This document shows positions 53,542-63,410 of a stretch of 64,000 nt of DNA, one piece after another. The DNA lies in assembly GCA_025786725.1 (NCBI GenBank), contig JAHLTZ010000022.1, positions 310,001 through 374,000 of the forward strand, read 5' to 3'. A program made the translations under genes and the position numbers. Source of the stretch: Syncephalis fuscata S228 (Eukaryota; Fungi; Zoopagomycota). The first letter of the stretch is position 1; each line of letters begins with the position of its first letter. The notes under the pieces were generated by a model. It had not been told where the DNA came from, searched no databases, and was given only the letters and a program-made list of their open reading frames with translations.

Positions 53542-53604
53542 GCAGATTGAAGTAAAGACCGGGCAGGTTAAAATCAAGACCGAGCAGATTAAAAGCAAGG
53601 CTGA
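53542..53604 (+). repeat. Three imperfect 21-bp tandem repeats upstream of microexon gene 1
   Basis: gcagattgaagtaaagaccgg / gcaggttaaaatcaagaccga / gcagattaaaagcaaggctga. Confidence 0.7.
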
Positions 53605-53886
53605 GATACATCCTATTACGGCATGAGTCTATTGGTACACGCGCACCTCAGTTCATTGTTTGGATTGCTTTATTGGTTCATATTATACATTAATGGTATA
53701 TATCGTATACTACAGTATACTAGTACTCAGCATAATCATAAGTTTAAATAGCCCACAAAATATACACAAATAACTGCGATATCATCATCCCACCCTACTT
53801 CTTATTAAACACACACTACTCTCCACTCTATACCAACCGCACTCTACTATCTCTTTTTTTGTTTGTCTCAACAAATTAATATCACC

Positions 53887-56026
53887 ACGAAGCTTTCCAT
53901 TGCCGTCGTTTGCACCATTGTCGTCGCGCCTGTGGCCGCTACAGCCATTGTGGATGCTGATCCAGCTTTAGTTCGTCGTGGTATGTTGCAATAACAATAA
54001 ATATGCCATAGCATTTGCTTACCAATAATATTGCTAACTAATGATGATATTAGATTGTAAGTTGTATTGCTTATTAACTGTAATTACTCATTAATTGCAT
54101 GTTATATACTATGTGTATTATTAACTTAATGCTAATAGGCGGTAAGTGATACTGTATATTACTGACTTATAAATTAATTAATAACATGTATTACGTGTAT
54201 ACATAACTTAATACCATAGATGGTAAGATGTATTGTGTATTAACCGACTATGTGCTAATTTTATGTGATACATTGTGTGTATCAACAACTTAATATAATA
54301 GATTGTAAGTTATATTTTATATTAAGCAAACATTGACTAATTATATACTATATATTGTGTACATCAATGACTTAATATTAATAGGCAGTAAGTAGCATTG
54401 TATGTTACTGACTTATAAATTAATTATATACCATACACTATGTGTATTAACGACTTAATATAATAGAAAGTAAGTTGTATTGTATATTATTATTTTATTT
54501 TATTTTGAAGAGCTTGTGAGCCCCCGCTGCGCATAATTAAAGAATTTGCGCTGCTTCCCACTATATTTGGACTTTTCCAAACTTTTAACGGGTGGACTGC
54601 CACGTTTTTGCGCAAAATCTGGTCCATATAGATTTTACACGGGGGCCATCTTCCTTTAAATGGTGCTACACAGCACTATTCTCTTGAAGTTGGTCCCAAT
54701 TGGGTTTTCCTCGGCTATTCTGGCCAAGGTCTTGTTTCCGGACCTACTTATTGGGTTCTGGTTTGCAATTTGTTAACTAGAGAAAACTGGGGGGGGGGAT
54801 TTTCCACTTAAGGATTGATTCAAACTGAGGTTTGAACCCGGAGCCTTCAGCTCGGGAGACGCTGCCTTACCAACTGGGCTAGCAACGTCCCCCTTGTATT
54901 GTATATTAACTGCCTATGTACTAATTATATATTGTGTATTATATGTATCAATAACTTGGCACTAATTACGTGTTATATATTGTGTGCATCAACAATCTTA
55001 TTAATAGGCAGTAAGTGGTATTGTATATTAGTTGACTATATATTAACTGCTATTTATTAATAATACCAATTATTTAATATTAATAGAATGTAAGTGATAT
55101 TGTATATTAGCTGACCATAGATTAACTATACTGTTTACTAATGGTATTAATTATTTAATATTAATAGAATGTAAGTGATATTGTATATTAGCTAACTATA
55201 CATTAACTATTTGTTTACTAATGGTATTAATTATTTAATATTAATAGGCGGTAAGTGATATTGTATATTAATTGACTATACATTAACTATACTATTTACT
55301 AATTGTATTAATTATTTAATATTAATAGTTGGTAAGTGATATTGTATATTAGCTGACTATACATTAACTATACTATTTACTAATTGTATTAATTATTTAA
55401 TATTAATAGAATGTAAGTGTATTGTATATTATGTACCGTTTACTAATTATATATTATGTACTTTATGAATCAACAACATTATTGATAGATTGTAAGTATA
55501 ATTTTATATTAATTGACTATGTACTGACCACATGCTATATAATGTGCGCATCAACAACTTAATATAATAGGCAGCAAGTAGTATTGTATATCACTTGACT
55601 ATTTACTAATTATATATTGCATTTTGTGTATCAATAACTTGCTACTAATAGACAGTAAGTTGTATTGTATACTAACTGGCTACTCACTAATTACATGCTA
55701 TTTACTGTATCCATCAACAACTTAATATCAATAGAGCGTAAGTTGTATTGTATACTAACTGGCTACTCACTAACTAAATGTTATTTACTGTATTCGCCAA
55801 CAATTTAATATTAATAGAATGTAAGTAGCATTGTATATTAATTGACTATGTACTGACCAAATGCTATATACTGTGTGTATTAATAACTTAATATAATAGG
55901 CAGTAAGTAGTACTGTATATTAATAGATTATACATTAACTATATGACATGTAATATCTTTCTTTATAAATGCCGATAACCCGCAGCTATAAGAGCATCAG
56001 CATCGGTAGTACAATCAAACCACTAG
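53887..56026 (+). CDS. Microexon gene 1: secreted Cys-rich peptide precursor with 18 three-nucleotide exons; ACG start and one in-frame stop, so possibly a pseudogene or dependent on exon skipping
   Basis: Exon 1 is 53887-53980: (M)KLSIAVVCTIVVAPVAATAIVDADPALVRR+G. TAG|NNN|GT(GC) exons start at 54054, 54139, 54220, 54302, 54385, 54467, 55008, 55087, 55168, 55248, 55329, 55410, 55489, 55571, 55652, 55735, 55818, 55900. Final acceptor uncertain (55985, 56000 or 56009, all in frame to TAG 56026). Confidence 0.75.
53981..55940 (+). repeat. Tandem array of ~79-85-bp intron+microexon units
   Basis: Consensus GTAAGTnnnnTTGTATATTA...CTAATT...AACTTAATATTAATAG + NNN. Confidence 0.95.
54490..54893 (-). 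mobile_element. tRNA-derived SINE (family B), copy 1, inside an intron of microexon gene 1
   Basis: Reverse complement of 60809-61210 with no differences seen apart from the tail; TSD TTGTATTGTATATTA at 54475-54489 and 54894-54908. Confidence 0.9.
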
Positions 56027-58191
56027 TACAATACACTTTAGATATATATTCGGTAAAAATCAAAACCATTTGACAACTACGCCGTCCAGTCTATTTATAT
56101 ATCAAGTTTTGGCCAATGCTCTGGTTTATCCAGTCTTTAATCAATGGGATCATTATTTTACCACCAAGCTTGCATCTAGTTGTTTCTATTCAACTGTGCA
56201 AGTTTATTGTAATAAACCTATGGTTCCATCCTAACTATATACAATCAAATAGCTATATTTATAATCATGTTTTATTGATATCTAAAAACCGATAATTATT
56301 AATTATTAGTCAAACTAACAAAAGACATGTACGATATATTGTATTAGCTATAGGCATAGGTTGGTATGAATAGTAGCAAAACTATTATTACCATATAGCC
56401 AAATAATATTATAAAACGAATTAAATAGAGAAATTCAATACGTGAATAGTGATAGTGAGACTATACTGTATACAATTAACCAAGAATAATGAACAAAATG
56501 AATTAAAATCTACTAAAAGAATACAGTTAGCAATAAAATTTTAGCTTTTGTTAATGTAATTTTTGCAATATACACTATTAATGATATAGACGGACATATA
56601 GTATATGTATACAGAATAGATATGTACAGTACAATAATAATGATAAATAAATAGCTTAATGACCAATGACACTCACCACTCAATTTCATCTTTAATAAAG
56701 CAAATATCTTGTTTAAATGTATGGCTATTATAGCTATTTAACTGCCAAATCACATTAAATAACCAATAGTGTACTTAATATTGTGTAAGAGTTGTTTTTA
56801 TTTAGCTAATAAAAGTATTATAATATTTAGTACAAATCAAGTGGTTTAAATGATCTGTCACAACACCCTTTTAAGCTTCTTTCGCCATGTTCCACAACTT
56901 TTTTAAATTAGAACATTGGCGTGGCTATTGTGAAATTTAGGAATGAATATTACAAATAGCTTGTTTTAGTTTATCAATGGAAAATGCCATGTTGGCGGCT
57001 TTATTTTGCATATCTTTACTCATGTTTGATACACTAGCTAGTTAATTTGAGTTGATCAAAGCAATAATATTTTATATAATTCGGAATTATTTAATTGCTA
57101 AATCTTATATCTGAAACGCTCCAAGCCAGTCTAATTTTATTTTTTAATTAAATCATTTTTATTTGCATTACACTTTATTCATTTTAATAGTTGCTTCGTT
57201 AGTAGTTTGTATTTGTTTTTCAATAAAGACATTTGTTTTAACATTAACTACCAGTTCAATATTAATACTAATTCCTACAGAACCTATTCTTGTATTATAT
57301 TTTTGCGTTACATTTGCCATCAGTATATTATTGAAAGTTTTTTAAAAAGCACAATTGGCGTTGCTGTTAACATTGCTACAATTAACTAAATTACGCAAAT
57401 AAGCAAAGTTTTAAATTAAAATTGTTGCATTTATTGTAATTAACTTTTTCCCTATCAGGCATTTTTAGCTTTTTCAAAATTCCTCAATTTTGCTTTAACT
57501 TTTCTATTTTGAATTCTCAAAGCAAAATTAGTTCCAATCAAAAACATGTTATTATGTACAACAAACATAGTCATAATGTTTTCATTGACTAATTTAAAAT
57601 CTGTGAGGCCGATCATTATTGTTGTTGGTTATGCGTAGAAAGATTGATTGAATATTAATAAAAGCCATTGATCGCAATTCCATATTGTTCCGCAGTTGTT
57701 ATTGTTGTCAGTACGTACAGTGTGGTTTCCTTGCGTCTGAATGGTTTATTCTATTATCCAATCTTCTACTATTGCATTTGAGCATTTTTGGTATCAACTT
57801 GGCAGGTGCAAATTATTTGCCAACCATTGATAAAACAAATGGCCTCCACCATATGCAATAATGATAAGTTGAGCGTCTTCACTAGGAAGAACTTGTGGCA
57901 ACAGCTGTAACCAGAATATACGGCATACCGTTGAGGTTACTTGAACAAATATTGATGCAAAATAAGAGAAATAAAGACTAGGAATTGAAGTGTTTTTTAT
58001 TGATGTTCAAATACACATGCTATTTATATTGTTATATTCAACATTATTGTATAATATGTTACTGAATAGAATATTTAAAAAAATAAGACGACAAGATAGT
58101 AATGAGAAAAAGGCGGTGAAATGAGTCAATAAAAATGTGAAAATCAAAGTACAGTAGTTCCATCTTTTTAATTTAAATAATACAGAAACAG

Positions 58192-60699: not shown

Positions 60700-63410
60700 T
60701 CAATCTAACAGCACTAATGTTTTGCAAGCATCGATTACATTAGTTTATAAACAAAAAACAGTATGTGTTATATAATTCGTGAGTATTCAATTAATATACA
60801 ACATCACAGGGGGACGTTGCTAGCCCAGTTGGTAAGGCAGCGTCTCCCGAGCTGAAGGCTCCGGGTTCAAACCTCAGTTTGAATCAATCCTTAAGTGGAA
60901 AATCCCCCCCCCCAGTTTTCTCTAGTTAACAAATTGCAAACCAGAACCCAATAAGTAGGTCCGGAAACAAGACCTTGGCCAGAATAGCCGAGGAAAACCC
61001 AATTGGGACCAACTTCAAGAGAATAGTGCTGTGTAGCACCATTTAAAGGAAGATGGCCCCCGTGTAAAATCTATATGGACCAGATTTTGCGCAAAAACGT
61101 GGCAGTCCACCCGTTAAAAGTTTGGAAAAGTCCAAATATAGTGGGAAGCAGCGCAAATTCTTTAATTATGCGCAGCGGGGGCTCACAAGCTCTTCAAAAT
61201 AAAAATAAAATAATATACAACATCACTTACTGCCTATTATGTGAGGTTTTTATACATACATCACATAATATAAAATTGGCGTATAGTCAACGTGTATACC
61301 GTATTATTAGCCATCTATTGATATTGAGTCATAGATGCACACAGTAAATAGCATGTGATTAGTGTCGAGTCGATTAATATGCAATGCCACTTACCGCCTA
61401 TTAATATTAAGTTGTCAATACACATAGTTCATAGTATATAATTAGTGCATATTTAGCTGCTATACCATGTCACTTACAATCTATTAATATTAGTTTGTTG
61501 ATGAGCACAGTTCATAGCATTTAATTAATGCATAAGCAATTAACACACAGCAGCACTTACTCTCTATCAATAACAGATCATTGATACATGCAATACATAT
61601 TATGTAGTTATTATATAGTCAATTTATATAAAACTACACTTACCGGCTATTAATATTAAGTTATTAAGGCACACATAACAGAAAAATATAATTAGCGTAT
61701 AATTAATTGATATACAATGTTACCTACGGCCTATTATAATAAATTTTAGTATACAAAGTACATGGCATATAATTAGCGTATAGTTAATTGATATAAAATG
61801 ATTCTTACAAGCTATTATAACAAGTTGTTGATGCACATGACACATATCATTTGATGAGTGTATTTCCATAAATATATATTAGCACTTACATTCTATTAAT
61901 ATCAAATAGTTAAATATACACATTTTATAGCATATAATTAATTTAAGGCCAACTATGCATATATATATATATCGTCACTTACTAACTATTATATCAGTTG
62001 TTTGTAATATAATATATGGTGGATAGTTAGCGTATAATTAGCTGATATGCAATAGCACTTACTGCCTATTATGTTATATTGCCAATATACATATTATAAA
62101 ATATATAGTCATTACATAGTTAATTAGTGAATAATAGTATTGAGAGTACACTAGCTCTCCAAACTAGCTATTATACAATAACACTTACAAGCTATTGATG
62201 TCAAATTGTCAGATATGCGCATTGCATAGCAGCGATTAGTGTATAATTACTTAGCATATAATAGCACTTACGAACTATTGATATTAAGTTTTATGTATAT
62301 AGTATCCAATGTGTAATTAGCGCATATTCAAGTGTTATTAAATAACACTTGCCAACTATTAATATTAAATTATCAAACGCACGCATTATATAGTATGTGG
62401 TTAGTGTGTGGTCAGTTAATATACAAACTACTAACAAACTATTAATATTGTGCCGTTTATACAGGCGGCAAATAGCATTTAATTAATGTATAGCTAAAAA
62501 GTATAAGTATCACTTACAGCCTATCAATTTTAAGTTATTGGTAGAAACATTATACAAAATGTAATTAGTATAGAACTGATTAGTATACAATGGCACCTAC
62601 AATCTATTATATGAGATTTTGATACAATCATATAGTATATAATTAGTTCGTATATAAGCAGTACATAGTTCCACTTACACCCTATGAATATTGAGTTGTT
62701 GGTAAAATAGTAAATAAGTGTAATTAGTACAAAGCTAGCTAGTTTACAATGTCACCTACATCCTATTATATTATATTTTAAATAAATAAAATTTATAAAA
62801 TACAGTTAGCACATAGCTAATCAGTGCGCAGCTTCACTTACGTCCTATTAATATTATGTTGTTGATAGATATGACAGACAACATGCAGTTAGGCTATATT
62901 CAATTAGTATACAGTCTCACTTACGTCCTGTTAAAGTTATGTTGTTAACGCATGTAATACATAGCATATAATTGGTAAGTAATCAATTAATATAAATAAC
63001 ACTCACCGTCTATTGGTATTAGTTAGTTGATATAATGGCATATACCATACCATTAGTGTGCAATCAATAAATATACAATGCTACTTACGGGCTATTGATA
63101 TTAGGTTGATAAATGAATACAATAATTAGTTAGATTGCTATTAAGATACAATACCACTTACTATCTATTTATGTTGATTTGGCAAACAAAAGCAATGTTC
63201 AATTAAATCTTAATTAATATGTAATATTACTTACGTGCTATTAATGTTGATTCAGCATTGGTTAAACATAATACTAGTAAGCATAAATTATTGTTTAGTT
63301 ATTTTAAGTGCACATACGACGACCTTCTTGATTTGGCGTAGCATCCACTATGGCTATATTAGCTACAAAAGCCACGAAGAAAGTAAAAAGACGACAATGA
63401 AAAGGTTCAT
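60700..63410 (-). CDS. Microexon gene 2: secreted Cys-rich peptide precursor with 25 three-nucleotide exons
   Basis: Exon 1 is 63410-63318 and needs +1 T in the homopolymer at 63385-63389 to equal the 94-nt paralogous exon: MNLFIVVFFTFFVAFVANIAIVDATPNQEGR+C. The 25 microexons give PHTHGRRWYCFFVPCIKSCPENCDG with no stop; last exon gives MLLD* or N*. Confidence 0.85.
60809..61210 (+). mobile_element. tRNA-derived SINE (family B), copy 2, inside the last intron of microexon gene 2
   Basis: Head GGGGGACGTTGCTAGCCCAGTTGGTAAGGC...CTCCCGA...GGTTCAAACC (A and B boxes, Gly-CCC-like loop); (TAAAA)n tail; TSD TAATATACAACATCAC at 60792-60807 and 61211-61226. Confidence 0.9.
61211..63317 (-). repeat. Tandem array of ~73-93-bp intron+microexon units (one 126-bp unit)
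   Basis: On the + strand ACTTAC-NNN-CTA, or a close donor variant, recurs 25 times with ~82-bp period. Confidence 0.95.

Follow-up and report, generated by a model that had tools for sequence, protein, structure and literature searches.

A very likely pseudogene or null allele in a Syncephalis fuscata gene family predicted to be built of three-nucleotide exons

Organisation of the locus

Syncephalis fuscata is a zoopagalean mycoparasite, that is, a parasite of other fungi. In the window, as we call the whole stretch of 64,000 nucleotides analysed here, the locus comprises a leader exon of 94 nt followed by 18 exons of 3 nt each, all in phase 1, as obtained by reading and parsing the sequence between 53600 and 56400. 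Exon 1, read from the sequence at 53887..53980 on the plus strand, provides the signal peptide together with a short pro-region whose last residues are RR, and the 5' flank and 5' UTR before it (53787..53886, plus strand) are conserved in the family according to the alignment of leaders with paralogues. In the letters of the assembly, ACG (53887-53889), preceded by CACC, occupies the place of the start codon, and a Pro codon stands at 53929-53931. Parsing places microexons 1-6 at 54054..54469 on the plus strand, with starts at 54054, 54139, 54220, 54302, 54385 and 54467 and introns of 78-82 nt, and microexons 7-18 at 55008..55902 on the same strand, with starts at 55008, 55087, 55168, 55248, 55329, 55410, 55489, 55571, 55652, 55735, 55818 and 55900 and introns of 76-80 nt. 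The acceptor is TAG in 18 of 18 microexons, while the donors are GTAAGT (16), GTAAGA (one) and GCAAGT (one). Microexon spacing is ~78 nt, and introns throughout the array measure 73-82 nt with the single exception of one of 538 nt, which holds an insertion; all 18 units qualify as members of a run of TAG, 3-nt phase-1 exon and GTAAGT repeated ~78 nt apart.

Exon 1 stops one base into a codon, and every triplet supplies the last two bases of one codon and the first base of the following one. Read in this phase, the window array yields a Cys-rich peptide, with five Cys in 18 codons and one in-frame TAA, whose T (55089) ends microexon 8 and whose AA (55168-55169) begins microexon 9 (55089..55169, plus strand); this stop comes after 8 mature codons. 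The original prediction, made from the sequence, had described a 94-nt exon 1 ending RR in phase 1 with ACG in a good context, 18 triplets, and a phase-1 peptide with five Cys and one stop; re-reading confirmed the exon and all 18 triplets with their positions and reading, and parsing reproduced the peptide. The last intron (55903..55985, plus strand) carries CCG instead of CAG at the acceptor position of the family (55972-55974), and a new AG at 55984-55985. It is followed by a conserved terminal exon and 3' UTR (55975..56170, plus strand) that is present in all parsed paralogues and that, in the intact ones, provides the stop codon within its first few codons. A terminal exon with a coding end at 56026 had been predicted; the exon is present, but the acceptor assigned to it (55984-55985) is a derived site, the family's own at 55972-55974 being mutated.

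The introns of the window array are homologous, aligning to one another over their full length, and the unit alignment places the three variable bases exactly between the conserved TAG and GTAAGT. Tandem Repeats Finder (TRF) reports the region as a tandem repeat with an 81-82-bp period, in which units 7-12 form a nearly homogeneous 81-bp sub-array (89% matches over 54999-55431), and both TRF and the unit alignment find neighbouring units to be the most alike. Within the window, the motif AG-NNN-GYAAG is found 47 times, a count that 0 of 100 shuffles reached (expected, 11.4). An Rfam search over 53600-56400 gave no match except a chance one to mir-19 (E 0.21). Neighbouring genes in the stretch include a mitochondrial-carrier ORF and an ABC1-kinase gene with a 54-nt intron.

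The exceptional intron is intron 7 (54470-55007), which lies after the sixth microexon and contains a SINE-like insertion of 404 bp (54490-54893) between 15-bp target-site duplications (54475-54489 and 54894-54908; 54475..54908 in all, minus strand), antisense to the gene. The empty site is present in contig C8, which carries the sibling copy described below. The element has A-box-like and B-box-like motifs and an (AAAAT)n tail, ARAGORN finds no tRNA in the insertion, and at least 42 copies with 86-100% identity exist in the genome, including a second one in the window at 60809-61213 and others at loci L063, L071, L072, L077 and further places. All 12 inspected insertions share the same orientation, antisense to the gene, and follow the same conserved 5' intron motif, the insertion point being identical or within a few nt, and most of them have a target-site duplication of 13-16 bp. 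Judged by these sites, the element looks specialised on array introns. Its contigs in RNA run X1 have a depth of 80,000-142,000, the highest in the stretch.

The gene family and its reading frames

A genome scan for array periodicity, as suggested in the original prediction, found 2,564 adjacent array-unit pairs in the 29.4-Mb assembly versus 0 for the reversed control, and sizing the family by its leader, likewise suggested there, gave at least 231 candidate copies of leader plus 5' UTR in the genome, of which at least 40 were scored, with 87-98% identity to the window. Intact members have a first exon of 94-97 nt, encoding a signal peptide and a pro-piece ending in dibasic RR, then 18-37 phase-1 exons, of 3 nt or in a few cases of 6 nt, and a conserved last exon that carries the stop codon; the intervening introns are homologous, ~78 nt long and close to consensus in their splice signals. 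The predicted joined product is 20-38 residues long and usually contains six Cys, arranged as C-x2-C-x3-C, a loop of 9-17 residues, and C-x(3-5)-C-x3-C. That the leader is conserved while the mature peptide is rewritten, as proposed for the window gene, proved correct as a property of the whole family.

GenBank also contains intronless relatives that share the leader and the Cys spacing, among them P0124 and P0121, the latter a single ORF on contig C240. A leader-profile search of 1.84 billion proteins returned 16 cluster representatives, without exception hypothetical proteins from S. fuscata, and a word-based protein search with P0121 only 4 annotated relatives, while looking up P0121 and a window ORF as exact protein sequences gave no match; to judge from these matches, the family is lineage-specific to S. 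fuscata. Pfam assigned the intronless members to no family, one sub-threshold Gloverin match being disregarded.

A parser tolerant of 6-nt exons and of GTAATT or GTAAGG donors was applied to 13 paralogues fetched in full. In 12 of these, 18-37 microexons are read without a stop and termination occurs within the first few codons of the conserved last exon. When the order of triplets was shuffled within the genes of these 13 paralogues (2,000 shuffles), stops in phase 1 numbered 22.6 +/- 3.5 and never fewer than 10, versus 1 observed in 391 codons, while Cys codons in phase 1 numbered 64 versus 31.5 +/- 4.0 shuffled, the other two phases having 1 and 14. In addition, the joined triplets repeat the scaffold that the independently annotated intronless relatives encode in one piece. 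From stop avoidance and Cys enrichment in one phase, together with the six-Cys scaffold of the intronless relatives, it follows that the arrays, as read in their genomic letters, are coding; their splicing, which we infer, is strongly implied by the same reading-frame evidence.

A 1.8-kb contig of run X1 maps to the ABC1-kinase gene but lacks its 54-nt intron, which has been spliced out; the run therefore represents real RNA. Word depth in X1 is ~61,000 for leader-like and ~54,000 for last-exon-like sequence, 329 for the ABC1 gene and 1-100 for array introns. The leader-like and last-exon-like contigs are only 90-99% like the window and hence come from paralogues; RNA contigs of this origin gather at the terminal exon and 3' UTR region (55975..56170), and intronless relatives may contribute part of the leader and last-exon depth. 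No joined triplet string was found among the X1 contigs listed. Position 53930 has the paralogue base in every RNA contig and the window base in none, a comparison by which the silence of the window copy is not proven, since contigs drop rare variants. Low-level expression of the window copy is possible, and its array splice signals are still intact.

Public annotation treats these loci differently. GenBank models such as P0138, P0125 (KAI9596839.1) and others translate an array intron straight through as coding and leave the microexons unused, and the true products of the microexon loci are absent from it. P0121 is found three times at 100% identity (C240:2569-2775, C308:180381-180587 and C345:42395-42601), and several leader copies likewise occur as identical pairs, one on a large contig and one on a small contig; such identity suggests either that the duplications are very recent or that the assembly contains redundant contigs. 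The paralogue L070 (C290:149400-155400) has 13 microexons, an ATG and an in-frame TAA just before the last microexon, and is either another decayed copy or a gene with a naturally short product.

Probable decay of the window copy, and its intact sibling

In the alignment of 30 leader exons, the start codon is ATG in all 29 paralogues and ACG in the window alone, and codon 15, in the core of the signal peptide, is CTT (Leu) in all 29 and Pro uniquely in the window. Reading exon 1 of the window copy finds no in-frame AUG elsewhere in it. Contig C8, 27 kb in length, is colinear with the window over >8 kb and carries a sibling copy, with ATG, 21 microexons, no stop, and an end five codons into the last exon, from which a mature peptide of 26 residues with four Cys is predicted. 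The flanks differ by 0.46-0.64% (identity ~99.5%), while within the gene divergence is 2.6% in the leader, 4.7% in introns 1-6 and 2.6% in the last-exon region, with parts as low as 1.1%; roughly 74 substitutions separate the two copies. In introns 1-6, 22 of the 24 C8 differences fall into two clusters (54311-54371 and 54426-54440), a distribution compatible with gene conversion by other units or by paralogues.

Comparison with C8 accounts for the lesions. In the leader, the changes from the C8 to the window state include 53888 T>C and 53930 T>C, and at the 3' end 55973 A>C, which turns CAG into CCG, and 55985 A>G, which creates the new AG. In a mosaic stretch of the array, four C8 units (CTT, GGG, ATC and TTG) stand where the window has its second AAT, and this second AAT unit in place of the four is what produces the TAA in the window copy. 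The homogeneous 81-bp sub-array might be mis-assembled, in which case only the stop-codon lesion would be affected. Thus, the window copy retains the conserved leader of the family, while an ATG with an intact signal core, an open frame and the terminal acceptor were not found in it. We regard it as very likely that the window copy is a young unprocessed pseudogene or a null allele of the lineage-specific S. fuscata family; its array splice sites are all intact, as would fit a very recent loss. C8 is either a paralogue or the other allele of the window locus.

Two readings had been offered for this copy, decay or a working gene with non-AUG initiation and exon skipping; the former was borne out and the latter is unsupported. 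It is arithmetically correct that skipping either of the AAT exons (55087 or 55168) abolishes the TAA, and a gene that starts at ACG and skips one of them would yield a five-Cys peptide from a locus in which the CACC context is kept and the splice sites of 18 of 18 microexons are intact; schistosome micro-exon genes are known to vary by exon skipping (PMC10526429). Nevertheless, such a gene would be alone in starting without ATG, found in 29 of 29 paralogues, and would do so with no other in-frame AUG in exon 1, with Pro in place of a signal-core Leu that is at least 90% conserved, and with its terminal acceptor lost, while the sibling on C8 has an ATG and a frame that is open with no skipping. 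Its odd number of Cys would be atypical for a family whose peptides mostly have six, and the window base at 53930 appears in no RNA contig. We consequently consider a functional gene of this kind extremely unlikely.

The lesions could instead be artefacts of assembly or sequencing, the true locus being intact and C8 perhaps the correct version of the same place. Such an explanation draws on the fact that C8 is just 27 kb long and colinear, with flanks ~99.5% identical, that several small contigs duplicate parts of large ones, and that near-identical 81-bp units are prone to collapse in assembly. It is nonetheless very unlikely, because the copies differ independently in several ways that are improbable as errors (the 404-bp insertion with its target-site duplications, substitutions in unique sequence, and unit number), and roughly 74 substitutions indicate two real sequences. 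The array itself might also be a non-coding minisatellite with incidental splice-like motifs, the gene consisting of leader and last exon alone. By every repeat-finder measure it is a tandem repeat, joined mRNA is absent among the contigs listed, and GenBank models make no use of the microexons; yet stop avoidance and Cys enrichment in the triplet order are confined to a single phase and go far beyond what shuffling yields, the arrays reproduce the Cys scaffold of the intronless relatives, the three variable bases lie exactly between TAG and GTAAGT, and RNA depth collapses over the arrays, which makes this explanation highly improbable. Decay of a copy of a coding family therefore stands as the preferred reading.

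A second array gene in the window, on the minus strand from 63410 down to about 60750, had been taken in the original prediction as the reference, but is not an intact one. Its exon 1, at 93 nt, lacks one base in a run of T, so that the ATG is out of frame with the leader and its frame meets a stop after 15 codons. The 24 microexons read open with four Cys, the final intron holds a copy of the 404-bp SINE-like element, and no AG stands at the customary terminal acceptor. This gene has probably decayed too, or else shows a homopolymer error of the assembly.

Comparison with known systems and proposed mechanism

The closest known kind of gene is the schistosome micro-exon genes (MEGs), of which ~35 are known, with exons of 3-81 bp and long, unrelated introns of up to 5 kb (PMC10526429). 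The likeness is one of architecture only: the products are secreted, a longer first exon carries the signal peptide, the coding sequence is mostly split into short symmetric exons before a 3' exon, gain, loss or skipping of exons keeps the frame, and in both cases the genes are lineage-specific and fast-evolving. In contrast to MEGs, the S. fuscata genes are fungal, exist in hundreds of copies and encode Cys-rich products; their exons are nearly all one codon long, and their introns of ~78 nt form a mutually homologous tandem repeat. No sequence relationship to trematode MEGs was found, there being no Pfam match and all 16 leader-profile matches belonging to S. fuscata. Isolated 3-nt exons are also known in the animal genes RPS24 and MAP4K5, which demonstrates that the spliceosome can include an exon of this size (PMC12686416, PMC8632122), but they are single and lie between long introns in ordinary genes, whereas S. 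fuscata has runs of 18-37 consecutive ones. In recursive splicing, a 5' splice site is used directly after upstream ligation and the intermediate exon is usually removed (PMC6224609); the likeness of the arrays to it is inferential, and each 3-nt exon would here be kept.

Other systems share single traits with the family. Conotoxins combine a conserved signal and pro region with a hypervariable Cys-rich mature part, and in superfamilies of this type, as in S. fuscata, a leader with a dibasic site is conserved while the mature peptide varies on a fixed Cys framework, although the gene structure is entirely different. The introner-like elements of fungi and algae are near-identical short introns dispersed by insertion in unrelated genes. 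S. fuscata likewise has many near-identical short introns in one genome, but these stand head to tail within one family and always in phase 1, which fits tandem duplication. Dispersal of the introner kind was not found: the genome matches listed are all in head-to-tail runs, and 13 of 13 parsed genes are members of the leader family. The uniform phase of the introns and their head-to-tail homology thus speak for tandem duplication rather than repeated intron insertion.

The signal peptide, the dibasic site and a helical, Cys-stapled model suggest that the products may be secreted effector or antimicrobial peptides. The AlphaFold model of P0121 residues 32-69 is helical (pLDDT 83.7). Foldseek gave no match to it in the PDB, and the VIA-align matches (Z 2.6-3.5) are weak and include generic helical hairpins as well. 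Disulfide-stapled helical hairpins, such as the alpha-hairpinins (nigellin, 2nb2), in which paired C-x3-C motifs pin two helices, and the scorpion toxin WaTx (6ofa), are helical like the P0121 model, these structural matches being weak (Z 2.6-3.5), and venom and hairpin peptides have no sequence relationship to the family.

Short fungal introns are recognised as units, and exon length need not matter. Splice sites 3 nt apart could hardly be bound simultaneously, and the introns would accordingly be removed one after another in an intron-defined manner, with each ligation presenting the next 5' site in a way that would resemble recursive splicing (PMC6224609). Ordered removal is suggested by the near-perfect signals and the uniform intron. 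In evolution, arrays would grow longer or shorter and change in content as intron-plus-codon units recombine unequally or convert one another, and since the exons are symmetric and the introns homologous, codons could be added, deleted or swapped without frameshift. That unit turnover takes place is indicated by the window/C8 pair, by C1 copies with 25 and 34 units, and by the sub-array at 54999-55431, and in the window copy, unit turnover together with point mutations would have destroyed the gene.

We consider it likely, overall, that S. fuscata encodes hundreds of secreted Cys-rich peptides one codon per exon, that 20-40 consecutive 3-nt exons are routinely joined, and that novelty arises codon by codon through unit duplication, loss and conversion. 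Within such a one-codon-per-exon reading, the window copy and its C8 sibling would be a snapshot of unit turnover. Our literature search found no description of single-codon exon runs or of microexons in Syncephalis, and codon-by-codon gene construction through unit duplication, loss and conversion is probably a mode that has not been described before. If the arrays are spliced as the frame statistics imply, they take exon length to the extreme genome-wide, and would offer both a natural test bed for spliceosome handling of sites 3 nt apart and, in a mycoparasite, a new way of diversifying peptides rapidly. Such genes are invisible to gene finders and read aligners, and hence similar families may hide elsewhere. 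The value of the window locus is that a nearly identical intact sibling exists on C8: the pair displays what changes, namely unit number, triplet identity, conversion tracts and site-specific insertion, and indicates that family members are lost as well as made.

On contig C1, two genes form an inverted pair ~55 kb apart, one at C1:475325-479000 on the plus strand and its partner at C1:534399-529000 on the minus strand, with 34 microexons and six Cys or 25 microexons and three Cys depending on the copy.
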